The notes beneath the pieces are model-generated. The model did not search any database, had not been told where the DNA came from, and worked only from the letters and a program-made list of their open reading frames with translations. 64,000 nt of DNA from NCBI GenBank assembly GCA_964057225.1, contig OZ059895.1, positions 12,276,001 through 12,340,000 on the forward strand, read 5' to 3'. Position 1 is the first letter of the stretch. Each line of letters opens with the position of its first letter. Below, one piece after another: positions 6,101-62,555 of this stretch. The position numbers and the translations under genes were made by a program. Origin of the DNA: Auanema rhodensis (lineage: Eukaryota > Animalia > Nematoda).

Positions 6101-6910
6101 TTTCAAATTTTTTTAACGATCATGCCACGTTGAAAGTACGCCATGCAGCTGATTTTCAATTTTATCTCTTCCGTAACAAATGTTTTCAATTCTCCAGCAG
6201 TTTTACTTAGATAGCTAAACCCAAGGCATCAAAATATCTTCAATCTTATTTCTATATTACATTTATAAACCAGTAGTTCATGAACCTTCATCTTAACTTT
6301 ATTGTTTCTATCTATTTCCTATTGAAACAAACAATGTTTTAACACTATACAACTGTGAAACCTTTTTTAATTTATTGTATTTGGAGCTCATAAGATTCAA
6401 TATCATCGAGGGATTTAGATGTAGTGTGGAAAATTACATAACTAACATGAAATTGGAAAATAAGCAATAACGAGGATAAATATGTAAATCATTGAATAAC
6501 AGATATTTTCGCTTACGACCATACCACGTTGAAAATACGCCATGCAGCTGATTTTCAATTTTATCTCTTCCGTAACAAATGTTTTCAATTTTCCAGCAGT
6601 TTTACTTAGATAGCTCAACCCAAGGCATCAAAATATCTTCAATCTTATTTCTATATTACAGTTATAAACCAGTAGTTTATGAACCTTAATCTTAACTTTA
6701 CTGTTTCTATCTATTTCCTATTGAATTAAACATTGTTTTAACACTATACAACTGTGAAACCTTTTTTAATTTATTGTATTTGGAGCTCATAAGATTTGAT
6801 ATCATCGAGTGATTTAGATGTAACGTAGAAAATTACATAACTAACATGAAATTGGAAAAAAAAACAATAACGAGGATAAGTATGTAAATCATTGAATATC
6901 AGATATTTTC

Positions 6911-28827: not shown

Positions 28828-29564
28828 TTTCAAATTTTTTTAACGATCATGCCACGTTGAAAGTACGCCATGCAGCTGATTTTCAATTTTATCTCTTCCG
28901 TAACAAATGTTTTTAATTTTCCAGCAGTTTTACTTGGATAGCTCAACCCAAGGCATCAAAATATCTTCAATCTTATTTCTATATTACAGTTATAAACCAG
29001 TAGTTTATGAACCTTAATCTTAACTTTACTGTTTCTATCTATTTCCTATTGAAACAAACATTGTTTTAACACTATACAACTGTGAAACCTTTTTTAATTT
29101 ATTGTATTTGGAGCTCATAAGATTTGATATCATCGAGGGATTTAGATGTAACGTAGAAAATTACATAACTAACATGAAATTGGAAAAAAAACAATAACGA
29201 GGATAAGTATGTAAATCATTGAATATCAGATATTTTCGCTTACGACCATACTACGTTGAAAGTACGCCATGCAGCTGATTTTCAATTTTATCTCTTCCGT
29301 AACAAATGTTTTCAATTTTCCAGCAGTTTTACTCAGATAGCTCAACCCAAGGCATCAAAATATCATCAATCTTATTTCTTTATTACAGTTATAAACCAGT
29401 AGTTTAAGAACCTTCATCTTAACTTTACTGTTTCTATCTATTTCCTATTGAAACAAACATTGTTTAAACACTATACAACTGTGAAACCTTTTTTAATTTA
29501 TTGTATTTGGAGCTCATAAGATTCAATATCATCGAGGGATTTAGATGTAACGTAGAAAATTACA

Positions 29565-30008
29565 TGTTCCATACGTGTCTTATAAAGAAGGCGGTTGACG
29601 TTGTCAACCGACTTTTGGTTAATAGAATTCAATAAGAAACTAGACCTGAACTACTTTTTGTATAAATTCAATTATATTTGTAATTAATATTTTGCTATAT
29701 AAACCCCTGAGAAAGCAACTAGGTTGGCTTTCTCATACTTTTTGTATAAGTTTATATAGCAAAATATTAATTACAAATATAATTGAATTTATACAAAAAG
29801 TAGTTCAGGTCTAGTTTCTTATTGAATAAGGCTTTCTCATAACATGTAGTTTCATTTATTTGATTATTGTATTTTTGCTTTTATAATAGTATTTCCATAT
29901 TCTGAATAAACTTCTTTTTTTCTACTCTCTGTTACTTTTACAATGGCATTCACACTATTAAAGTGCATATGGTTACCTAGCCGGAACCCTAGGAACCAAT
30001 ATGGAACG
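29565..30008 (+). repeat. 5' LTR (TGTTCCATA...TATGGAACG) with an internal inverted duplication
   Basis: Near-identical to the LTRs at 54049 and 61013 except for 105 extra bp. Confidence 0.9.
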
Positions 30009-30027
30009 TGGAGGTTCCACCGAGATT
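30009..30027 (+). promoter_or_regulatory. Primer-binding site, tRNA-Gln
   Basis: TGGAGGTTCCACCGAGATT is complementary to the 3' end of eukaryotic tRNA-Gln (…AATCTCGGTGGAACCT-CCA); also present at 52073 and 54394. Confidence 0.88.
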
Positions 30028-31134
30028 CGTCTATAAGGGACGAATCTCTATGGACCGCTACTTTTCTCACCTTTAAATTACTTTCTCTTTCTTTGAAATC
30101 CTTTTTACTCTAAAAATTTATCTTGATTTCATATCCAAAAATTCTAATTAAATTTTATATTTCAAACTTTCAAGTCAATTTTGTATCTAAAACAAAAACT
30201 CCAATTTAATCTAGTAATTCGAATTTATCTCTAAATATCATTCTTCTAACATCATTTCTGATATATCTATTTGAAAAAAAAAATGTCTTATACATATTAT
30301 CTATTACAATCTATATTCCTACTTCATTCTTCTACTTTCCTGTATGTTTAAAGCATATAATGCATAAAAACTCTTTTTGGAACAAGCATATCAAAATATT
30401 TAACCACGAATAATATTAAAAACTATCAATTCATGAAATATCTTAAAGACATTTATTCATATTGCAACACTTACCCATAAGTCATCTTGAAAACATCTTA
30501 TCACAAGCTAAATTTTGAAAATATCTATTCATAAATCATTCTGAAAACATTGATTCATAAACAAAACCACTATTCTTGATATCTAACGCATTTTTATGAG
30601 AAAGCCCCGTAAGAAACAATACCAGACATTCTCGGGACATCGCGCGGAGGCGTACACTTCTTGATATAAGACGCGCAATCATTTGAAATTAACCCTTTTT
30701 GATCCCATATGTGAATTAAAGAATATTTTGAAGTTGAGTGGTCCCACCTAGCAAGACCCAGGGGAACAGAAGTAACGTTAAAAGGGAACGTCTTTTGGGG
30801 GTTTGTTTAGGTAAGAGAAGTCTGGAAAAGTGAATATGAGAAGCCTGTGTACCTGATCTTGTCCATGACTGAAAAGGAGCAATATACAGACCACTGTCTC
30901 ATATCTCATGCCTCTTCGAGAGATAAGAACTTGGTCTTTTGCTAAAGGTCTCACGTAGTTGCGGACTCGTGTATGAACCTGACCAGGCTATTCTCCGACT
31001 AGAGACCCGCTGCAGGCTGGCCTCCTGACAGGAACAGGAGTCGCGCATACCAACCCCATATTGTCTTATACGTTTTGTATAATATAAGCTCAGTCTTCGT
31101 TGGTTAATAATTTCCTTCCAGGAAACCAACAAAA

Positions 31135-34100
31135 ATGGCTGACGCAGCGAATCAAAACCCTCCGCCGGGAAATATTGCCCAAAATGCTACGAATAGCGCA
31201 GAGAAAACTCAGACAGTGGAAGCAGCACTGCATAGAAACCAAAGAAAAAGAGGACCACCGGATGCATTCCGACCAGATGCGAAATATCCGAAAACGAACA
31301 CGAAATCAAAGAAATTACCCCCTATTCCGGGTACACCGCTAACTGCTAAGAAACTTTATACTACTGCTATTAAAACTACTAGGCATGCAATTAGCTTGAA
31401 TAAGAATAAAGCATCATCCAGTAAATCCACGCCCAAACGCTCTTCTCACTCTCCAAAAACAGTTGTTAATACCGGCACTAACACTTGTCCTCCGAATCAC
31501 ACTTCTCCTCAACGCCTTGTTCAAACCGCAAATGCGGAAATCCTCATCTCTCCTATTCCTAGAAACTCTCCCTCTTCCACTGATCAATCTTTGCACGGGC
31601 ACTCTCTGTCTCCTGTCTCTTCTTCGTCAGACAATTACGTAAATTTGACTTCGATAGTTACAGAGCAGAGAAGTCGCCCTCAAATGGCAGAGCAGATGGA
31701 GCAAGACAATTCTCCTATTGCAAGAGCCCACAACGTTTCTATTCGCCATCACAAACCTACGCTTTATGATGGATCGGTTCCATTCAACCTCTACATGCAA
31801 AGACTAGAAGGATATTTCGATGCCCTTCAAGTCCCTATTGCCGAGAGACTTTCCCATCTCCATCTACTTCTCGGAACGGATAGAGCCGCTGAAGCTCTTC
31901 GAACTATACCAGCAGAAGACTTACGCCAGGGATGGAACCATGTCAAACGCATACTATCGGAGAAAATACAACCTCCAGAAAAGAGAGATGCAGCATTCAC
32001 AAAACTCACTCATTTGAAACAAGGAGAGCACGAAACGGTACAAAATTTCGCTCAACGCTGCAGAAACCTTGCCTATAAATTATGCAACATGGACTCGACA
32101 GCCGATGAAAGAATACTACAAGAAAAAGAGTTTCATTCTTAGGAGGACTACGAAAGACTTTAAGAACACATGTCAATAACCGCAGCCCTATCACCTTTGA
32201 TGCAGCCGTGACTATTGCCGAAACTGTGGAAGCTGACGAGGATCCTTCGCTCTTGGTCAACAACTTGATTAAAGACGTGGAGCAACTAGAGATTAATAAC
32301 GGTCTTATAAACCACATGAGAGCATCACAACAGGAGAAAATCTATGACGGACCACAAATACACCAATCAAGAACATTCTATGGAAATCAATCAAGACCAC
32401 AACACCCACAAGAGCAATGGAATCAAAGAAGAGGAGGATACCGCTCACCAAGATACCAAGAGGATCGACAAAATAACCGTCACAACTTCAGACAGGATAA
32501 CAGAAACAATGGATATCAACGAGGATACAACAATTATCGTAGCCCCCAACGGTACGATAGATACAATAATCGATACAACAGCAGAGGAAACGATCGATAT
32601 GATAGCAGAAGGAATGATCGGCAGGAGCACAGAGAAAACGACCGATACAACCGCGGAAACTGTCCTGATCGCGGATTTCAACAACGAAATCGCAGCACTT
32701 CATATGGACCACATAACAGGCACAGAGATCGCACAAGAAGCCCCAGCGTCCGTTTTCACGTTAACAAAGTAGAAAAGGAAACAATCAAAACAAAGAAGAC
32801 ACTTCCGTTCATACCGCTATTCTTATCCGTCATCGCCCTATCTATGATACCTTGCCAGGCAGACAACACCTATCAACTCTGCATTGGCAAACGAGGAGGT
32901 ATTTTCCTCGAACCACCTCGCCCAACCACCTGCTCAGACTATGCACACAAGGACGGAGTCGAGATAAAAACAGTGGAACTATTCGCAGAAAATATGAATT
33001 ACAAGGAATGGGAAGCATGGAAATGCGCCAAGGAAATCTATAAAACGTGCGCCCACGACTTATTCTTCATCAGGGAAAATAACGTTACATTACTCCGAAT
33101 AGAACCAGCCACTCCACAAGAATGCCAAACAGCCATTCAAGAAAGACGACACATGGATAACGACCTCAATCGCGAAGCACCAGGACTGTTCAAAGCCCCT
33201 ATGCCATCTAATACACAATCAAAATCGTTTTGGGCATCCTCTTGCACAACCAAGTCAAGATTCACCTTAGAAAGAGGAATGATGACTAGCCTACACGATG
33301 ACACTATAATCTCCGACTTATTTATCAACACTGAAGGATGCACTAAGCAACAAGGAGTATGCAACACCACCAACGCAGTTATCACATGGATCCACCCAAT
33401 GATCATCGAAATTGCGACTACACGACATTAGGGAAATTCGAAGCACTAATCAACAATGATACTGTATTAATCTCGGAAATACAAGGAGCACTCATTCTCA
33501 AAAACAACACGCCAGACCCTACAGCTACAAGATGTATGAATACAAGCATCTACTCAACTGATAGTGGTACGTACATTTCCATCAAGGACTTAAAAACACA
33601 CCGACGTCAAAAGAGGATGGCACCCCAAGAATACCCTACGAGATTCTTCAATATCACTATCTACAAATCACTTCGCCTCACAGACAGTTCTACAGGTGTA
33701 GTACCTATGTACCAGACATATCGAAATAGGAAAAGACTGGACAACGCTTATAACCTTATGGAATATCTCAAGACATCTAGCGTACACATAGGTTTCATCA
33801 AATTCCTACAACTAGATTCATCAAAACTGAAGAACCGACTCTTATGGCACAACTACACTGACATCAACATGGTTATCCTGCACACACTTGCAGAAGCTGA
33901 GATTCGACTTTCTACGAAAATTGCCATCGAACACCTACTGCCATCAGAGATCACGGCAAAACTCAGCAAGCAAATCACTATCAGCGACTTTGCCACACGT
34001 CTACTCAACTACGAAGGCGATTATCTCGACCGAGCAAGACAAATAGCAATTGAAATAGCTCACACACCTACCACTCTGGCAACAGGAGAGACTATTCCAT

Positions 34101-51194: not shown

Positions 51195-51531
51195 TGTCGC
51201 TTGACAACTGGACTTTTACCTCCAAGTATCAGTCCAAGTATGGAGTTGGTTCGTATGAGTGCGGTATTATGCGTTAAGACAAGTTAAATGAAGAAAGGTT
51301 TATTCAATAAATGCAACAACAGTAAAGTGAACAAGTGGATTGATTTTAGAATTTCCAAGAAATCCTAAAATCAATACAAAATTGGTGAGACATGAGTTTT
51401 AACCATCTGGTTCTCCCTTTTATAGGGAGGCACCAGATGGATCAAGGGGAGGAGAATGTTTTTGCGAAACAAAGTAAGAATGAGTGAAAATCAGTATGAA
51501 ACTTACATATTCTTTCACGTCGACCGTGACA
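51195..51531 (-). repeat. BEL element 5' LTR
   Basis: Direct repeat of 41353-41689; TATAAAA and AATAAA on the element strand. Confidence 0.95.
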
Positions 51532-51659
51532 GGCCCAACGTTGCTTGACTTGCCAGATCGGACGGGATGGCGTACTTTCAACGTGGTATGGTCGTAAGCG
51601 AAAATACCTGATATTCAATGATTTACATACTTATCCTCGTTATTGTTTTTTTTCCAATT

Positions 51660-52345
51660 TGTTCCATACGTGTCCTATAAGTAGAGCGATTGACAACGTC
51701 AATCGCTTATAAAACGGAACATTATAAAAACAAATAGCTGACGCTACATTTGAGAAACAGGAATTCAATGCAAGAATGAATGAACACTTTTTCATATTGA
51801 GTGTAATTAAAGAAAGCCCAATTCAAGCGGATTCAAGTTCCGCGGACCTGATATAACCACTTTTTATGCTCGTAAGGAAAACTATATAAGGTTTTCTTTC
51901 GAGTCCTTTAGGCTGCGACTAGAAATCATGATGTAACTTTTATTATTGTAATTTGTATACTTTATCATGAATAAAGCTTTCTCTCTATACTCTTTATCAT
52001 TTATATTTGGAAGAAAACTAAATAAATCCATGTGGTTACCCAGCCGGAACCCTGGGGAACCACCATGGAACGTGGAGGTTCCACCGAGATTCGTCTATAA
52101 CCGACGAATCTCTAAGAACCATATTTCGCTTCATAAATTTAATTTTGAAATCTTTTATACATCTAATTAAAGAATTATATTTCGATTATACTATATGAAT
52201 TTAATCTGAAATCTTTCTCTTCTTTATTTCATTCATTCAAAGAACTTTATTTTGATTTTGATTCATAAATTAATACTGAAATCTTACATACATTTATTTA
52301 AGAAAATATATTTTGAAACAACTTAATTTTCTTTAAATTAAATAA
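51660..52345 (+). mobile_element. Divergent TGTTCCATA-family LTR (51660-52072) + tRNA-Gln PBS + leader remnant
   Basis: Same termini, hairpins and PBS as the 29565 LTR but a different interior; truncated and fused to a 5S start. Confidence 0.85.
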
Positions 52346-53911: not shown

Positions 53912-55193
53912 AATTTTATCTCTTCCGTAACAAATGTTTTTAATTTTCCAGCAGTTTTACTCAGATAGCTCAACCCAAGGCATCAAAATATCTTCAATCT
54001 TATTTCTATATTACAGTTATAAACCAGTAGTTTATGAACCTTCATCTTTGTTCCATACGTGTCTTATAAAGAAGGCGGTTGACAACGTCAACCGACTTTT
54101 GGTTAATAGAATTCAATAAGAAACTAGACCTGAACTACTTTTTGTATAAATTCAAATATATTTGTAATTAATATTTTGCTATATAAACTTCTGAGAAAGC
54201 AACTAGGTTGGCTTTCTCATAACATGTAGTTTCATTTATTTGATTATTGTATTATGCTTTTATAATTGTATTTCCATATTCTGAATAAACTTTTTTTTCG
54301 CTACTCTCTGTTATTTTTACAATGGCATTCACACTATTAAAGTCCATATGGTTACCTAGCCGGAACCCTAGGAACCAATATGGAACGTGAACGTGGAGGT
54401 TCCACCGAGATTCGTCTATAAGGGACGAAACTCTATGGACCATTGCCGCTACTTTTCTCACCTTTATATTACTTTCTCTTTCTTTGAAATTTTTTTTTTT
54501 ACTCTAAAAATTTATCTTGATTTCATATCCAAAATTCTAATTTAATTTTATATTTCAAACTTTCAAGTCAATTTTGTATCTAAAAAAACTTCAATTTAAT
54601 CTAGTAATTCGAATTTATCTCTAAATATCATTCTTTTAACATCATTTCTGATATATCTATTTGAAAAAATGTCTTATACGTATTATCTATTACAATCTAT
54701 ATTCCTACTTTATTCCTCTACTTTCCTGTATGTTAAAAGCATATAATGCATAAAAACTCTTTTTGGAACAAGCATATCCAAATATTTAACCAGATAAGAA
54801 CTTGGTCCTTTGCTAAAAGTCACACGTAGTTGCGGACTCGTGTATGAACCTGACCAGGCTATTCTCCGACTAGAGACCCGCTGCAGGCTGGCCCCCTGAC
54901 AGGAACAGGAGTCGCGCATACCAACCCCATATTGTCTCTTACGTTTTGTATAATATAAGCTCAGTCTTCGTTGGTTAATAATTTCCTTCCAGGAAACCAA
55001 CAAAGATGGCTGACGCAGCGAATCAAAACCCTCCGCCGGGAAATATTGCCCAAATGTGTGACTATTGTATATGTGACTATTGTATGTGTGTGACTAACAC
55101 TAACATACTATAACATATACCTTTTTTCTTGTGTGTTACCTTTTCTTGTGTTACTTTTTCTTGTGTTATGTTATGTTGTGTTATGTTATGTTG

Positions 55194-56667
55194 AACTTCG
55201 AATGAGATAATAAAGCTGAAATAAGAGGCTTTGTTAGGCAAATACAAACATTAAAATCTACCCTTATCATTGAGAGTAAGGCCATAACACTTCGGCTCTA
55301 TGGCTCGGGCCACCCCTATACATCCATCTATAATTAATATTATTATGTAATATGAACGAAACACTATAACACGAATAAGAGTATAATCAAAAGCTAATAA
55401 TGACAACTATTAGAATAATATAATAAGAATAAGATAGAATAAGAATAATATTAATTGATATATTGATCTGACGTCAAGTCACGTAATGCGTACATGTTTA
55501 TTGAACTTTATACCATGTACGGGACGCATCTATACAATAGTCAGGAAGATGCATCTTTTCCAAATTACGTGACTATTGTATATGTGACTATTGTATATAC
55601 CTGATTATTATATGTGTGACTATTGCCTATGTGACTATATGACTAACATAACATAATACCTATTTTGTGTTACCTTTTCTTGTGTTACTTTTTTTGTGTA
55701 ATTAAACATATTTAAATAAAACGTTAGTTACATATACAATTTTTATTAAACAAAAAGACAAAAAAAAACAAAAAAAAATCACTTAGTTTTCAAATATTTA
55801 ATGAAGTAATTATCCAGTTTACTATTTTTTGTCACCATTTCTTCGTGCTGTTTCTCGTAGCCCAATAATGTACATTGCCTCAACTTCGAATGAGATAATA
55901 AAGCTGAAATAAGAGGCTTTGTTAGGCAAATACAAACATTAAAATCTACCCTTATCATTGAGAGTAAGGCCATAACACTTCGGCTCTATGGCTCGGGCCA
56001 CCCCTATACATCCATCTATAATTAATATTATTATGTAATATGAACGAAACACTATAACACGAATAAGAGTATAATCAAAAGCTAATAATGACAACTATTA
56101 GAATAATATAATAAGAATAAGATAGAATAAGAATAATATTAATTGATATATTGATCTGACGTCAAGTCACGTAATGCGTACATGTTTATTGAACTTCATA
56201 CCATGTACGGGACGCATCTATACAATAGTCAGGAAGATGCATCTTTTCCAAATTACGTGACTATTGTATATGTGACTATTGTATATACCTGATTATTATA
56301 TGTGTGACTATTGCCTATGTGACTATATGACTAACATAACATAATACCTATTTTGTGTTACCTTTTCTTGTGTTACTTTTTTTGTGTAATTAAACATATT
56401 TAAATAAAACGTTAGTTACATATACAATTTTTATTAAACAAAAAGACAAAAAAAAACAAAAAAAAATCACTTAGTTTTCAAATATTTAATGAAGTAATTA
56501 TCCAGTTTACTATTTTTTGTCACCATTTCTTCGTGCTGTTTCTCGTAGCCCAATAACGTACATTGCCTCAACTTCGAATGAGATAATAAAGCTGAAATAA
56601 GAGGCTTTGTTAGGCAAATACAAACATTAAAATCTACCCTTATCATTGAGAGTAAGGCCATAACACT
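55194..56667. repeat. 688-bp-period tandem duplication covering the 3' end and downstream flank of the SET-YR gene
   Basis: 55194-55979 matches 55882-56667; a degenerate further part-copy lies at 55054-55190. Confidence 0.9.
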
Positions 56668-59388
56668 CCTGCTTGGTTGTGACTGAGTGCCCTTCGGCTT
56701 CAGCTTGATCGAGACTTTTCCGTTCTTCTTCAACATTAGCGAAGCAGTCAATGGCTCGGGTGGCTGCCTGCCGGATCTTGGCGAAGCCTGACTGTAGGGG
56801 GAAGGGTAAATCAAAAAAAACCTTCTTCATGTCCGTAACTATAATGTAATTTAAAAATTAGATGTAAAGTTCAGTAGGTACCTAAACTTTTTTTCGATGT
56901 CGAAAACGGAAATAGCATGGTAGGGTTCCTGTACGTTTTAAAAAAACGTTTTTTACCCTCGTCTAGGTATTTAAAAAAAAAGGCTCAAATTCAATCGGGA
57001 GAAAAAGGATCATTGGTTCCCCATTTTTGGAAACTTCCACTGTCATGCGGAGATAGCGTCCACCACCTATGTCTGCCTAAATAAATCTGTTAAATTAATA
57101 ATAAATTAACCTTACTATGCTCAACCCGTCGGTTGTGGTCTTATAATAGTGTTCGGTCCTACTAACATTAAAAGCATTCACTGCTATTGCTAGTAATATT
57201 CCTAACTTTTTCCAGTCCAACTGGCTCATCACGAAATCTTCATTTTCGTTTTTTTCGATCCTCTCCACCTCCCTCACAAAAAATAGTTGATACGAACTGA
57301 ATGATCTTATCTTATTGATTAATAGAATATTTTACATACCTGTAGAACTCATAGTAGGTGAAAGTCTTCATCCAATTTTTTTTTCTATAGATTTTAATAT
57401 TCTGAAATGATTTAGTACATACATTAAAGTATAGTTCTTACCTGCCGGTAAACATTGCGTATATTGTAGATCTCATTCTTCAGTACCGCATCTTCATTAA
57501 AAAAAACTCTTCAAAAAAGGTAATATATATTCAATTAAAATGCATACCTGCACACTATAGCAATCAGTTCTAAAAATTTTTTTTTGGATACTCGGTCTTC
57601 GTCTTCAGTATATTTCAAAAATTGCAGACTCATCCTCACAGCACCGTCCAGACCATCAGATAGCAAAAACAGAGTTCTCAAAACCTTAAGGGTTTCATTT
57701 TTTTTGGCATTCCACGACACTTTCGGTTTGCAGGATTTAATCATCCTCTCCTTCAAGTTCTTATTGTCGAAATACGAGATCATTCTCGATATCAGCTCTT
57801 CTTCCTTTTTGGAGAAACATTCGACTTTCTTAAAAAGGTTGAACGGCCTCTGTAACCTGAACAGGCAATTACGTTTCGAAACATGGCTCTAATAAATAAA
57901 ATGATTACAACAATGCACAAAAAAACAGAAAAACTTCATCGATATGTATAGCTTCCAAAGCACGTTTAAAAATTTTTTCATCATCGGATACTAAAACTTT
58001 ATTAAATTATTAAAAGAATGCATATAGTCACCTTCACAGTTATTGTTATTATCATTCAAAAAATTTTTTAGTAGTACATTGAGGGAGTTTTTCCCCTTTA
58101 TGGTTTCAAATTCTTAATAATTAATATACGTGTTATTACGCAAAAGGCAGTGTACCACATTTTTCAGAGGCAATCTTCTTTTCATTTTCATGGGCTAAAT
58201 TAAAGTTATTGGAGATATCTTGTTATATCGCTTACCAATAAGATTAAAAAAATCATCAGCGTCCCCGACAGCTTCTTCCTCCTCCTGTTCTTCCTCCAAA
58301 TCCCCCTGATCTTCATTCTCCAAATCCCCCTGATCTTCCTTCTCCAAATTCCCCTGATCTTCCTCCTCCTCCACCTGATCTCCCTCCATCAATCTAGGTT
58401 TTTTTAAAAAACCTTGAAGGCGTGTCTGCTTTTGATATGGAGCATCACAATCTTTATTGGAAAATTTCCTCTTGAGCGAGGAGAGAACTCCATAATTTTT
58501 TATCGAGTTTGATCCATGGACAACGAGTGCGCTGGCCTTCTTAAATATATTTTATGAAAATTAAAAAACTTTATAAATTTCTGATTTTACCAAACAGTTG
58601 CAACAATCATGGAATGGATACTCCGACCCCTTCGAATACCCCGTATAATTCCATAACAATTGTTCTTCCTTCAAGATCTTCCTCGAACTGCGAAATACCA
58701 AAACAGGCATGTTCAGTTTTTTAAATTTCCCGACTTGGGACAAATACATATTTTTGTGTGTTACACAATGGTTGGCAGCGAATCCCAGAATAGTCGTCTA
58801 TATAATAGTCATATATATAATAGTCATAAATATACTTTTTCGTAAAGCTTCTTGAACTTCTCAGCATCCCAGGTTCCTCCTTTATTAACTATATAACACC
58901 CCTCTTTTTTTTTGTTGGCAACACCTCGTATCCGCATATGTAACTTCCAGCCTGAATATGTAATATTTATTAAGCTTCTTAACCCCCTGACCTCTATATC
59001 ACTTGCAGCAAAAAGTCCTAGTCCTGATGCCCCAGCGGGGCCAATTTTTACCTTGTTCCATTTTCCAATGAGGTAGCTGTAAAAGGATTGTATAATTTGT
59101 AAATTAATTAAGCTAACCTGATCTTTAAATCTTTACAATCCAAGTAACGATCATCTATGTCATACAAATTTCTTAATTTATTAAGATCTTCATGGCCATT
59201 CAATGACCAAATATTTTCTAAATATAACCGTTTAAATGTTTTAATGTTTAAAAAAAAAATCTAATGCGGGAATGTCGAAGGGTTCCATTTTGTGTTTAGG
59301 AATTATCGTTTTTCGTCTTCCGTTTATTGGTCGTACCAATAAATGGTCCTGCCGAGATATTATTGTTATTATAAAGCTGTTTTTTCAT
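56467..59388 (-). CDS. Multi-exon SET-domain / tyrosine-recombinase fusion gene (Crypton-like), ~780 aa; three homopolymer frameshifts in this copy
   Basis: Hand-spliced over about 14 short GT-AG introns. SET: GLGLFAASDIE…WDA…LGFAANHC…N…PVLVFRSSRKILKEEQLLWNY. Then QTRLQGFLKKPR and an E/D tract. Recombinase: AFNVSRTE…VEVSKNGEPMILFLP…KIRQAAT…GHSVTTKQECY. Confidence 0.72.
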
Positions 59389-59407
59389 TTCAAATTTTTT
59401 TTTATAG

Positions 59408-59890
59408 ATGGATCGGTTTATTCTTTTAATAAATCGGCACAGGTCAAAGGGGCTCCTGTCCAACAGGGAGTTCGCGCTCTTGGTAAAGGATCATGGTGAG
59501 GATCCATCAGATTTGATGGTCATGCAGACCAAGATTCGATTTTTGGCAAGGTTAGCCAAACCAGTAAGTTATTTGATCTAATTTAAGTAGTTCTTATCTT
59601 ATTGCAGGAATTTGTGCAAGCACTCTACCTCCTACAGAAATTTATTCCCTTTGATCTGACTGGCTACCGATGTACGACTTTCAGACCTTCGGCACCTGTA
59701 GTGACAGCGGATCTTCCGAAATTATCAGGATACTTTAATTTTTTGAAGTGCCGGGTCGGATGGGGAAAGGAGACTGTTTTTGAGGTAAATTTCAGGTTAA
59801 GATATAACTGTATAATTATTTTAGTACATAGATATTGATGAAAAAGGCTCCCTATCGTTGAGTTGTGGATCAATGTATATTTCCGTTTAA
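59408..59890 (+). CDS. Unknown 3-exon gene (132 aa)
   Basis: Exons 59408-59563, 59608-59784 and 59825-59890; phase-0 introns of 44 and 40 nt; open frame through to TAA. Confidence 0.65.
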
Positions 59891-60142
59891 GAAATCATGG
59901 ACCAGCTGAAAACGTTTCAGTAAGTTCTTCTTTTTTGGAAAATTTTATTTACTTTATTCATTAATTTTTTTTTATTAATTTATAATAATTCATTCTATCT
60001 GCTACCCAAACAACAAAAACAATGTTTTCCCCAATCATCAATCTTAATATCTATGTATCACAAAATATATACTTACCTATTTTTTTCACTCTATATAAGC
60101 TCAAAATTCACCTCAAGCAGAAAAACTCCCAGCACCACAAGA

Positions 60143-60778
60143 ATGGCACTCGTCTTCCCTCCACCAGCCTGCGAGACACCTACCGCGATGATCAAGGAAA
60201 AATGGATCAAGATACATTCGCTCCAGATAGAACTACAACAACTGGAGACAACAAACAACCGGACTAAAAAGATAAGAATTCTCCAATCATTTTCGGAGAA
60301 TTTAGCCAGAGTTACTCTATTAATAGAGACTCTGGAAAGGTTACAATGTTCATGTAACAATGATGAAGAAGAGATGGCCAAAATGGCGCAAAACTGGTCC
60401 GAAGCCACTGCCAGCACCAAGGCCACCATCAACAAACTACGCGAAGATCTAGGCTATCCAGCCTCCGAAAATGTAGCTAGCGCGGATCTTATCCCAAGAT
60501 AGGCCGCGGAAGAGATCCACAAGAGCTGGACAGAAAAAAGTATGATGGAATCGACCAACCAGTCGATTAGGAAGGCGGGAGACCTGATCAGCCAGGTCTT
60601 AAGGATACTAATGGCGACGCGCGCCACCACTCCGGACCAGAAAAGAAAGAAAATGATGATAGCAGGCCAGGCGACGGAACTGCTGACAGACGTCAGCCTG
60701 TTCCACATATGGACGGTCGCCGACCGGCAACCCGCGACCGACTTCCAGCTGGGACAAATCGAGGAGGAAGTAGGATAA
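60143..60778 (+). CDS. 3' accessory ORF of the LTR element (helical/coiled-coil), interrupted by one in-frame TAG at 60500
   Basis: ORFs 60053-60502 and 60542-60778 share a frame; TATATAA at ~60093; composition resembles the retroelement. Confidence 0.5.
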
Positions 60779-61572
60779 CAGCTGCACGAGGTGAATTCAT
60801 AGTTTTTCTTTTCTTCTCTTTTCATTTCTTTTTCTTTTCTTTTTCTTTTTATATTGTTTTCATTTTTTTTTCATATTATTCCTATAACACTATTATTCCT
60901 ATTAGTATTCTAATTCTAATTCATTTATATATATATTTTTCTCATTTGTTTCTTTTTCTTAAAAGGTCTAATTTCTTATAGCTGAGGTCAGCTACTTTTT
61001 CAATATAAGGCATGTTCCATACGTGTCTTATAAAGAAGGCGGTTGACAACGTCAACCGACTTTTGGTTAATAGAATTCAATGAGAAACTAGACCTGAACT
61101 ACTTTTTGTATAAATTCAATTATATTTGTAATTAATATTTTGCTATATAAACCCCTGAGAAAGCAACTAGGTTGGCTTTCTCATAACATGTAGTTTCATT
61201 TATTTGATTATTGTATTATGCTTTTATAATTGTATTTCCATATTCTGAATAAACTTCTTTTTCGCTACTCTCTGTTATTTTTACAATGACATTCACACTA
61301 TTAAAGTCCATATGGTTACCTAGCCGGAACCCTAGGAACCAATATGGAACGTCTTAACTTTACTGTTTCTATCTATTTCCTATTGAAACAAACATTGTTT
61401 TAACACTATACAACTGTGAAACCTTTTTTAATTTATTGTATTTGGAGCTCATAAGATTTGATATCTTCGAGGGATTTAGATGTAACGTAGAAAATTACAT
61501 AACTAACATGAAATTGGAAAAAAAAACAATAACGAGGATAAGTATGTAAATCATTGAATATCAGATATTTTT

Positions 61573-61691: not shown

Positions 61692-62101
61692 TTTCAAATT
61701 TTTTTAACGATCATACCACGTTGAAAGTACGCCATGCAGCTGATTTTCAATTTTATCTCTTCCGTAACAAATGTTTTCAATTTTCCAGCAGTTTTACTTA
61801 GATAGCTCAACCCAAGGCATCAAAATATCTTCAATCTTATTTCTATATTACAGTTATAAACCAGTAGTTTATGAACCTTAATCTTAACTTTACTGTTTCT
61901 ATCTATTTCCTATTGAAACAAACGTTGTTTAAACACTATACAACTGTGAAACCTTTTTTAATTTATTGTATTTGGAGCTCATAAGATTTGATATCATCGA
62001 GGGATTTAGATGTAACGTGGAAAATTACATAACTAACATGAAATTGGAAAAAAAACAATAACGAGGATAAGTATGTAAATCATTGAATATCAGGTATTTT
62101 T

Positions 62102-62555
62102 GCTTACGACCATACCACGTTGAAAGTACGCCATCCCGTCCGATCTGGCAATTCAAGCAACGTTGGGCCTGTCACGGTCAACGTGAAAATACGAACTTTA
62201 TTGTGTTAACGTTTTGTTCGTATTTTTTGTATTAACTCCACCCCCTTTAACCATCTGGTGCCTCCCTATAAAAGGGAGAACCAAATGGTTAAAATTTTTA
62301 TGTCTCACTAATTTTGTATTGATTTTAGGAATTTCTTGGAAATTCTTAAATCAATCCACTTGTTCAATTTACTGTTGTTGCATTTGTTGAATAAACCTTT
62401 CTTCATTTAACTTGTCTTAACGCATAATACCGCACTCATACGAACCGACTCCATACTTGGACTGATACTTGGAGGTAATAGTCCAGTTGTCAAGCGACAG
62501 GGCCCGGTTAGTACTTGGATCGGAGACGGCTTGAAAATCCCGGGTGCCGTAAGCT
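62102..62555 (+). pseudogene. 5S gene split by a solo LTR
   Basis: +1..+68, LTR, then +64..+119. Confidence 0.92.
62170..62499 (+). mobile_element. BEL-family solo LTR (330 bp)
   Basis: TGTCAC…GCGACA, TSD GGGCC; homologous to the 41353/51195 LTRs with a different U3 segment. Confidence 0.94.

Follow-up and report, generated by a model that had tools for sequence, protein, structure and literature searches.

SETMAR (Metnase) is a primate protein that joins a SET domain to a mariner transposase, and PR-Set7, the H4K20 monomethyltransferase, has a PIP degron. Crypton DNA transposons were reportedly described by Goodwin et al. in 2003. In animals, Cryptons lack terminal repeats, the R-H-R-Y tetrad of the recombinase includes the His of HxxR, and the DUF3504 genes (KCTD1, ZMYM2-4, QRICH1 and WOC) are domesticated Crypton recombinases in which most of the catalytic residues are lost (PMC3212892). 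A survey published in 2014 found no Crypton in nematodes (PMC4157794).

Here we describe a gene that touches on all of these systems, located in a 64,000-nucleotide stretch of Auanema rhodensis DNA, hereafter the window. Our analyses revealed that positions 56467-59217 form a real, intron-rich gene, predicted from the DNA to be spliced as a single unit. Its predicted product comprises a SET head, a conserved PIP-like motif and an acidic linker, and ends in a module some 390 residues long that is likewise conserved. The exon chain runs from 59217 to the stop at 56467 through 14 minus-strand exons, all with AG/GT borders and compatible phases (Table 1). An earlier note on this DNA had proposed a gene of about 14 introns and about 780 amino acids; the chain, with its sound borders and phases, agrees with that proposal, and the length is revised to about 707 codons plus a putative first exon upstream. 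The introns of the predicted SET-fusion gene are 38-51 nt long, save one of 123 nt.

Table 1. Positions in the window of the LTR element, the foreign segment and the exons of the predicted gene
Feature	Positions	Strand	Remarks
5' LTR	54049-54388	+	starts TGTTCCATA; TCTT just upstream at 54045-54048
Leader of LTR element	54389-55054	+	same sequence after the LTR of the copy at 29563-31183 (self-blast)
Foreign segment, left part	55055-56673		688-bp tandem repeats: 55194-55881, 55882-56569, partial 56570-56673
E15, last exon	56467-56591	-	includes stop 56467-56469
E14	56638-56838	-	GFAKIRQAAT, AEGHS, ECYGL: candidate second Arg, His, Tyr
E13	56882-57076	-	VEVSKNG (candidate Lys), LFPFS; 1-nt deficit in T9 run 56973-56981
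E12	57116-57296	-	best-conserved block NAFNVSRTEHYYK, with candidate first Arg; 51-54% identity to paralog
E9, E10, E11	57340-57888	-	E9 57888-57548, E10 57508-57442, E11 57401-57340; helical region before the recombinase-like core
E7, E8	57935-58112	-	E7 58112-58032, E8 57990-57935; frames and borders read
E6	58236-58539	-	PIP-like QTRLQGFL 58428-58405, basic residues next, acidic tract about 58392-58260
E5	58591-58797	-	C-terminal SET half: LGFAANHC, EQLLWNY, HDCCNC
E2, E3, E4	58836-59217	-	E2 59217-59118, E3 59076-58992, E4 58951-58836; N-terminal SET half; frames and borders read
Upstream region with putative first exon	59218-59932	-	candidate ATGs 59388 and 59288; contains T10 run 59250-59259
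3' internal part of LTR element	59951-61012	+	at least 20 genomic copies, 95-97% identity, matches all start here
3' LTR	61013-61352	+	followed by TCTT, then 5S rDNA

The gene model is corroborated by a collinear paralog on another contig (L020), which is 40-55% identical to the window gene and matches it in the SET exons, in the acidic tract and in the C-terminal exons. At three places an intron is present in only one of the two genes, which confirms the splice joins, and the E11/E12 join is backed by an intron-less ORF in the paralog. E9 was recognized in the paralog (phmmer E 3e-4), and E15, in which no RING finger was found, has a homolog in an inverted fragment of a further locus, C8 (phmmer E 5.4e-6). 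The least certain portion of the model is E7-E8, which hinges on the 123-nt intron upstream. The weakness of these linker exons would suit two neighbouring genes, one encoding the SET part and the other the recombinase-like part, instead of one fusion, but this division is highly improbable: the phases are compatible throughout the linker, no stop closes the SET half, and order and spacing are preserved in the paralog.

The N-terminal domain is, as judged from its signatures and profile matches, a SET lysine methyltransferase, perhaps of the KMT5A/SETD8-like kind. The motifs on which the earlier note had based its SET assignment were all recovered, namely GLGLFAASDIE (59024-58992), EGCY, WDA, LGFAANHC, SRKILKEEQLLWNY and the HDCCNC tail. 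The signatures GLGLFA, ANHCVTHKN (with NHC kept and PN changed to KN) and EQLLWNY lie in frame, and their counterparts in the paralog include INHCKMHSN and DQLCWDY. E5 alone matched Pfam SET (PF00856) at profile positions 66-104 with an E-value of 0.023 and 15.5 bits, against a Pfam cut-off of 22.4 bits, and the SET exon of the paralog matched with an E-value of 0.12. A family SET profile, built from the window gene, the paralog and two related genomic exons, matched 45 PDB sequences, of which 43 were SET-domain proteins (42 named methyltransferases, and 4ldg, an unnamed "protein with a SET domain"), in agreement with the assignment. SETD8/KMT5A chains ranked first among these matches (E 7.5e-4), lending some, albeit weak, support to a resemblance to PR-Set7/SET8 that had been proposed by eye; the aligned stretch comprises only about 35 C-terminal SET residues, over which KMT5A scored 22.4 bits, 4ldg 22.4 and SUV39H2 21.3. 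Other SET-like loci were observed in the genome at C42, C3:10.897 Mb and C8:4.437 Mb.

Between the SET head and the C-terminal module, both features expected from the earlier reading are present. The acidic tract lies where it had been placed, and the PIP-like motif is conserved, with QTQVSSYF plus KKKK at the matching place of the paralog (L020:4701-4724), which has an acidic tract too.

A genome search for copies returned a single one of full length, a paralog that is diverged and rearranged, and truncated fragments. The fragment at C8 is 89% identical to the window, and its homology stops at window position 59934; this locus is rearranged, with the 3' fragment inverted. C104 holds three near-identical copies as truncated tandem fragments. 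Among the copies outside the window, some lie within a satellite or a tandem array of 4.4 kb. The C8 5' fragment was considered as an internal-deletion derivative retaining both element ends, and this idea was rejected because its 3' side has no homology to the 3' flank in the window. Comparison with the C8 fragment revealed that the N-terminal exons evolved under purifying selection: pN is 0.02 and pS 0.117 (pN/pS of about 0.17), the protein is nearly identical, and the introns and upstream sequence differ by 15-25%.

The reading frame of the window copy is broken. There are two coding deficits of 1 nt each, in an A9 run at 58905-58913 (E4) and in a T9 run at 56973-56981 (E13). These two belong to the three homopolymer breaks counted in the earlier note; the third, the T10 run at 59250-59259, was dropped, since it lies in unconserved sequence upstream of position ~59217, where conservation with C8 starts, and C8 has an in-frame stop shortly ahead of that position. 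The T10 run is probably part of an intron or UTR and not a coding break, judging from this comparison. The whole region 59218-59932 shows no conservation with the C8 fragment, which has lost the ATG at 59388.

Each of the breaks is the shortfall of one base in a run of 9-10 nt, an error typical of long-read assembly, which would suit an intact gene that was assembled wrongly. We consider this improbable, since the T9 run proved to be as assembled when checked against contigs of two DNA runs (X1 and X2): these contigs span 56638-58353 without a difference and are identical at the T9 site and its flanks, although the runs may include the source sample, and the check is therefore not fully independent. 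Contigs without the extra base at the A run also exist, with the same reservation about their source. This run has ten A residues in the three C104 copies, nine in the window and eight, after ACC, in C8.

The copy could also be alive if the A9 and T9 deficits were bridged by -1 ribosomal frameshifting or transcriptional slippage. The zero frame reads A AAA AAG and U UUU UUA at the two runs, and each break requires exactly -1 on a slippery heptamer in the correct phase. Moreover, about 1.9 kb of exons past the A run are without a stop save for the second -1 site, and the 89% identical C8 fragment shares the length deficit in the A run, yet its flanking exons are under purifying selection. However, a 1-nt deletion in any long homopolymer yields such a heptamer automatically, and homopolymers commonly suffer deletions repeatedly. 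The run is an in-frame A10 in the near-identical C104 copies, and the distant paralog passes both places without a shift, its ORF L020:6036-6314 crossing the E13 stretch with no frame break. We therefore regard recoding as improbable, and treat the window copy as frame-broken.

For the C-terminal module, the likeliest identity judged from motifs and genomic context is a very diverged domain of the tyrosine-recombinase type, which would break and join DNA. The series FNVSR, VEVSKNG, IRQAAT, GHS and ECY was found on the minus strand in the order given by the earlier note, and the five residues named there (Arg, Lys, Arg, His and Tyr) are all conserved in the paralog, an outcome with a chance of about 0.01 given the identities of the two copies. 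The R, AEGHS and YGL of E14 are invariant in L020:6460-6636(-), a fragment of the paralog. On the exon model, the spacings R-K, K-R, R-H and H-Y are 32, 68, 28 and 9 residues, compared with 24, 75, 23 and 9 in XerD (reference alignment), and the His-Tyr distance of 9 also holds in the paralog. At the motif level, the proposed catalytic series is thus present with family-like spacing.

Beyond the motif level, the proposed recombinase identity was not confirmed. The His of HxxR, found in 38 of the 40 reference recombinases of our alignment, is absent: the sequence is GFAKIR in the window and GFAAIR in the paralog, so that position -3 is occupied by Ala and position -2 by Lys or Ala. Exon-by-exon searches of Pfam, PHROGs, NCBIfam and the PDB, an approach of low power, produced no recombinase or integrase match, and no matching PDB sequence, for any C-terminal exon of the window gene or the paralog. 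An HMMER search with the E12 profile (exon J/E) found 0 homologs among 1.84 billion proteins, a word-indexed search with exon G gave no candidate, and the ESM Atlas yielded nothing usable for exons G and D. Scanning the genome with the Pfam Phage_integrase profile identified 31 loci of the DIRS/PAT type, with the SET-fusion gene not among them, and the DUF3504 profile gave nothing relevant. When four DIRS recombinases of the same genome were compared by hhalign and hmmsearch, only exon E fell near the expected position, and not significantly. AlphaFold models of two natural ORF fragments were uninformative (93 residues with pLDDT 50.7; 75 residues with pLDDT 66.5 and two helices).

The positive signal is concentrated around the candidate lysine. 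The alignment of the paralog ORF L020:6036-6314 with XerD covers residues 170-241 of the latter, which extend from the catalytic Lys nearly to HxxR, and its score is reached by 36 of 20000 shuffles. The region of the paralog from the lysine hairpin to LFP matched our own 40-sequence recombinase profile with p 0.001-0.002 (hhalign P 0.015). The window exon pieces F and H fell at the expected profile positions with p 0.011-0.06; for E13 the values were 0.011 and 0.048. Neither of the flanking boxes reached significance against this profile: for box I, the window exon gave p 0.76 and the paralog ORF p 0.11, and for box II, the window exon gave p 0.50 and the paralog fragment p 0.65. The "GKGG" behind the sole positive score is replaced by SKNG both in the window and in L050, a distant third member, and three-member profiles including L050 aligned poorly and gave no recombinase signal.

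These blanks in the libraries and the PDB, the failure of boxes I and II, and the lack of homologs among 1.84 billion proteins would all be expected if the locus were a fast-evolving host chromatin gene, in which a SET head is joined to an orphan C-terminal domain unrelated to recombinases, and in which R-K-R-H-Y is a chance pattern within conserved blocks. Its copies would then have been scattered passively, through both segmental duplication and illegitimate recombination within DNA rich in repeats. The conservation of all five named residues with proper spacing and the score of the lysine-hairpin region at the expected place speak against chance, and searches with single exons are of low power. 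The genomic context bears on both readings.

The earlier note placed the gene within an LTR element in 5S rDNA, and this is correct: the window has 30 matches to 5S, and the paired LTRs, each of 340 bp and 98.2% identical, are flanked by TCTT on both sides. Between 55055 and ~59932 the interior of the element is replaced by a 4.9-kb foreign segment. Thus, the gene arrived recently, as intron-containing DNA carried on this segment, in a young LTR element of the 5S array. At the left junction, the canonical element continues from TTGCCCAAA into ATGCTACG, whereas the window continues from TTGCCCAAA into TGTGTGAC. Because both junctions between segment and LTR element show microhomology, illegitimate recombination or template switching fits better than site-specific integration. 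We found no terminal repeats of the segment, and its 5' end agrees to ~15 bp with the point at which homology to the C8 fragment ceases, which is the sole shared boundary. Each 688-bp unit in its left part repeats the end of E14, the final intron, E15 and the 3' flank, and carries short GACTATTGTATA-type repeats as well.

Passive scattering of a host gene is consistent with the microhomology, with the 14 spliceosomal introns and single full copy, and with rearranged copies such as the inverted 3' fragment at C8 and the truncated tandem fragments at C104. The recent relocation into a young LTR element and the recurrence of copies in tandem arrays are harder to reconcile with it. On balance, we regard a host gene with an orphan domain as a serious possibility, one that we are nevertheless inclined not to adopt. 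The reading that we prefer, to which we give a probability of about 0.4 as a whole, is that the gene is a frame-broken member of a small, lineage-restricted family, that its tail is a diverged tyrosine recombinase, and that this family is Crypton-like and marks chromatin through its SET domain.

Under our preferred reading, the family would consist of Crypton-like elements or derive from one; the recombinase would move the gene into tandem arrays, and the SET domain would mark the chromatin at the insertion site, perhaps recruited through PCNA. That the family mobilizes itself is inferred from motifs and context. For a Crypton, several copies with shared, defined ends would be expected, and we found one full-length copy and one shared 5' boundary. 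The designation "Crypton-like" in the earlier note is accordingly not sustained by the single full-length copy, the undefined termini and the microhomology junctions. Nor did we find in the literature the association of SET genes with Cryptons that it mentioned; PMC3212892 never mentions a methyltransferase. A scan of ten exon pieces from the gene detected no reverse transcriptase (RT) or other Pfam domain, and the remaining ORFs in 55055-59932 are short. The most specific form of the proposal is a family of Crypton-like DNA elements in a nematode-type genome, with a tyrosine recombinase that bears a KMT5A-like SET histone methyltransferase of its own and a PCNA-binding motif. Its members would home to repeated sequences in tandem, namely rDNA (5S and 28S), tRNA arrays and satellites, and this copy would perhaps be expressed by -1 recoding at the two homopolymers; in this form we consider the proposal rather unlikely.

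Should the tail be a recombinase, the locus would represent a mobile element with its own histone writer. It would be a parallel to SETMAR with another transposition chemistry, still attached to mobile DNA, and the first reported Crypton-type element in a nematode-type genome. Whether such an element sets the chromatin state of its own insertion site, and why such genes reside in rDNA, tRNA and satellite arrays, would then become testable. Should the tail not be a recombinase, the gene would still provide a conserved orphan domain of about 390 residues fused to SET, in a family missing from the protein databases searched.

To conclude, the gene shares features with several known systems and coincides with none of them. 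Like KMT5A/SETD8/PR-Set7, whose structures are the top PDB matches of the family SET profile, it has a PIP-like motif close to the SET domain; unlike PR-Set7, the motif in the window is without TD residues, and the SET alignment to KMT5A is short, with SUV39H2 and 4ldg scoring nearly equally. The SETMAR structure 3bo5 is also among the PDB matches of the profile. As in SETMAR, a SET lysine methyltransferase and a DNA enzyme of a mobile element, here a candidate, would be united in one protein. In SETMAR, a host gene with a fixed locus has captured a DDE transposase as the partner, whereas the partner in the window would be a tyrosine recombinase, and there the gene itself seems to move from one tandem array to another. 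The DIRS/PAT elements of the same genome encode bona fide tyrosine recombinases at no fewer than 31 loci (Pfam E down to 3e-12), in uninterrupted ORFs beside RT and RNase H, and have no detectable similarity to the window gene. The DUF3504 genes are host genes that combine a domain of recombinase origin with chromatin or zinc-finger modules, an arrangement for which the window tail is a candidate; unlike them, the window gene keeps Arg, Arg, His and Tyr. With Cryptons, finally, the locus has in common a low copy number, an intron-containing gene, the lack of terminal repeats seen in animal Cryptons and a candidate tyrosine recombinase as the only movement enzyme on the segment, with no RT seen in the exon pieces scanned. 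It differs from them in the putative identity of this recombinase, in the missing His of the tetrad and in the SET domain fused within the same gene.

The gene can be read on the minus strand as a chain of exons, E2 to E15, which was assembled from minus-strand frames and a scan for GT–AG introns, with borders and lengths also checked. AG and GT stand at every border and the phases are compatible. The introns measure 38–51 nt, apart from one of 123 nt before E7, and the E7 join is the least certain of the chain. The spliced gene of the earlier note therefore holds in its exon structure, although its proposed ~780 aa come down to ~707 codons (E2–E15); one extra base is needed in E4, one in E13, and no others.

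Coordinates of the exons and of the parts of the host element
Feature	Position	Strand	Remark
E2	59217-59118	minus	
E3	59076-58992	minus	
E4	58951-58836	minus	
E5	58797-58591	minus	
E6	58539-58236	minus	
E7	58112-58032	minus	
E8	57990-57935	minus	
E9	57888-57548	minus	
E10	57508-57442	minus	
E11	57401-57340	minus	
E12	57296-57116	minus	
E13	57076-56882	minus	
E14	56838-56638	minus	
E15	56591-56467	minus	
Leader of LTR element	54389-55054		same leader after LTR of copy at 29563-31183
Segment foreign to LTR family	~55055-59932 (4.9 kb)		normal family interior replaced
3' internal part of LTR family	59951-61012		at least 20 copies, 95-97% identity

A DNA search of the genome found no further full-length copy, the window copy being the sole one. 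Searches with protein exons, and tblastx, revealed a collinear paralog, L020 (contig C8, 26.732–26.734 Mb), whose identity to the window gene is 40–55% in the acidic tract and in the exons of the SET domain and the C-terminus. This paralog lacks two of the window introns and has one additional intron, differences that provide protein-level confirmation of two joins, E11/E12 and E13/E14. A 42-bp satellite truncates it upstream, and an inverted fragment downstream holds its missing homologs of E14 and the last exon. At the same locus (L020:3302–4120, 6313–6823 and 6733–6873; C8:26.73 Mb), the inverted 3'-end duplicate is fused to a (GL/SL)n microsatellite. A second C8 fragment corresponds to window 59934–58791 (89% identity over the 5' 680 nt, 82% overall), and contig C104 carries three fragments, 99% identical to the window, in a 4.4-kb tandem array. 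Between the window and the 89% C8 fragment, 4 of 94 residues encoded by the exons are changed, against a divergence of 15–25% in the introns and the upstream sequence (pN 0.02, pS 0.117); purifying selection was acting on the gene family. A third member, distant and dead (L050:1400–3931; C3, 10.655–10.658 Mb), contains the motifs SKNG and AIDSF...GHS together with a RING-finger exon, which is absent from the window gene, and is split by a Tc1/mariner-like transposase ORF of 311 residues (L050:2230–3162).

All protein and profile searches were run exon by exon. The Pfam SET model gave weak matches in its C-terminal motifs, with E 0.023 for the window exon and E 0.12 for its counterpart in the paralog, and two further genomic exons of the same subfamily reached E 4–5e-4. 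A family profile combining these exons matched 45 PDB sequences, 43 of them SET-domain proteins, and GLGLFA, NHC and EQLLWNY are all in place in the window gene. The proposed SET domain is right. The suggested resemblance to PR-Set7/SET8 is weakly supported by SETD8/KMT5A, the top PDB match (E 7.5e-4). A putative PIP-like motif occupies the same place in both copies (window QTRLQGFL, paralog QTQVSSYF), and in each of them basic residues come after it. Weak SET-like exons of the subfamily also occur at C42:49001, 68029 and 95112 (~19–27 kb apart), C20:131970, C8:4437420 and C3:10897192.

For the C-terminal tail, the results point both ways. The five residues that the earlier note had picked from the window only, as a tyrosine-recombinase catalytic series, are invariant in the paralog, where the best-conserved blocks are NAFNxSRTEHYYK and AEGHS, and the His-to-Tyr spacing of 9 residues, found in window and paralog alike, is that of XerD. 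A 93-residue ORF of L020 aligns to XerD 170–241, a stretch that begins at the catalytic Lys and ends immediately ahead of HxxR, with a score reached by 36 of 20000 shuffles. Against a 40-sequence catalytic-domain alignment (XerC, XerD, lambda Int, Cre, FimB, FimE, 30 further bacterial recombinases and 4 DIRS recombinases) it gave p 0.001–0.002 (hhalign P 0.015), and the two matching window exons fell at the expected profile positions (p 0.011–0.06). On the other side, the window and paralog exons found no match among Pfam, PHROGs and NCBIfam integrase models or PDB sequences, and a profile of the most conserved exon found zero homologs among 1.84 billion proteins. Neither the first-Arg exon, E12 (p 0.76 window, 0.11 paralog), nor the Arg-His-Tyr exon, E14 (p 0.50 and 0.65), scored against the recombinase profile, and the His of HxxR is absent from the tail. 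The GKGG that drives the L020 score reads SKNG in the window and in L050. A genome-wide Phage_integrase scan returned 31 DIRS/PAT-type loci, the window gene not among them, and no similarity was detected between their recombinases and the window gene. Judged from its sequence, the tail might be a tyrosine recombinase, a reading to which we assign a probability of about 0.4. The DIRS/PAT-type loci of the genome, at least 31 in number (e.g. L033, L041, L042, L043), are retrotransposons of several subfamilies; they encode bona fide tyrosine recombinases whose ORFs, 413–438 residues long, are uninterrupted and each overlap an ORF of RT/RNase H-like type.

Three homopolymer frame breaks had been proposed, with the suggestion that the gene may be intact or broken only recently. 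Two lie in coding exons, an A9 run at 58905–58913 and a T9 run at 56973–56981. The T10 run (59250–59259) lies upstream of the start of conservation at ~59217; in the C8 fragment, a stop stands shortly before the equivalent position and the ATG of 59388 is gone. The T10 "break" is probably non-coding, and the first exon only a candidate region. Contigs from two DNA runs equal the window without difference over 56300–58818 and 59167–59600, and T9 and T10 are therefore as assembled. For A9, the C104 copies have A10 and are in frame, and the C8 fragment shares the window's length deficit. In relatives, the corresponding stretches are L021:5925–5962 and, in L003–L005, the sequence near 1692. To restore the frame, each coding break would require a −1 shift, and each falls on a slippery heptamer of the classic kind (A AAA AAG and U UUU UUA); yet any homopolymer deletion creates such a heptamer automatically, and recoding is therefore just a minor alternative.

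Retroelements interrupt the 5S rDNA array (30 5S matches) that makes up the window. Direct repeats of 340 bp (54049–54388 and 61013–61352, 98.2% identical) bracket the gene; each begins with TGTTCCATA and has the inverted copy of it at the other end, and TCTT flanks the pair on both sides. They are the LTR pair of a single insertion, which bears out the placement of the gene inside an LTR element in 5S rDNA. The TCTT duplication occupies 54045–54048 and 61352–61355. Another copy of the family (L029, C3:12.5687 Mb) likewise abuts 5S sequence, and the two copies suggest 5S-directed insertion. An inverted partial 5S copy lies at 51512–51599, and inverted repeats of 150–176 nt (51195–51660 versus 62041–62499, 95–98% complementary) bracket 51.2–62.5 kb.

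The window gene retains its introns and sits within a young LTR element; its move there was therefore recent, and it travelled either as DNA or as a passenger of that element in antisense orientation. Self-mobilisation is counted against by the single full copy, which has no defined termini, and by the short imperfect microhomology to the canonical element at both junctions. At its 5' end, the limit of the foreign segment is also the limit of homology to the C8 fragment, and gene copies are located in tandem arrays. A GACTATT(A/G)TATA-type repeat in intron 4 (58836–58798) is the exact end point (58789–58791) of the C8 and C104 fragments, and recurs in opposite orientation in each 688-bp unit (55557–55654, 56245–56342) and at the segment's left junction (55046–55096); this repeat might act as a hot spot for recombination.

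The statement that SET genes accompany some Crypton groups found no support: in the literature searched, no paper connects Cryptons, or tyrosine recombinases of any kind, with a SET domain. Kojima and Jurka 2011 (PMC3212892) mention neither methyltransferase nor nematodes, and a 2014 survey (PMC4157794) did not find Cryptons in nematodes. For a SET domain joined to a mobile-element enzyme, as the window gene may be, the nearest analogy would be SETMAR.
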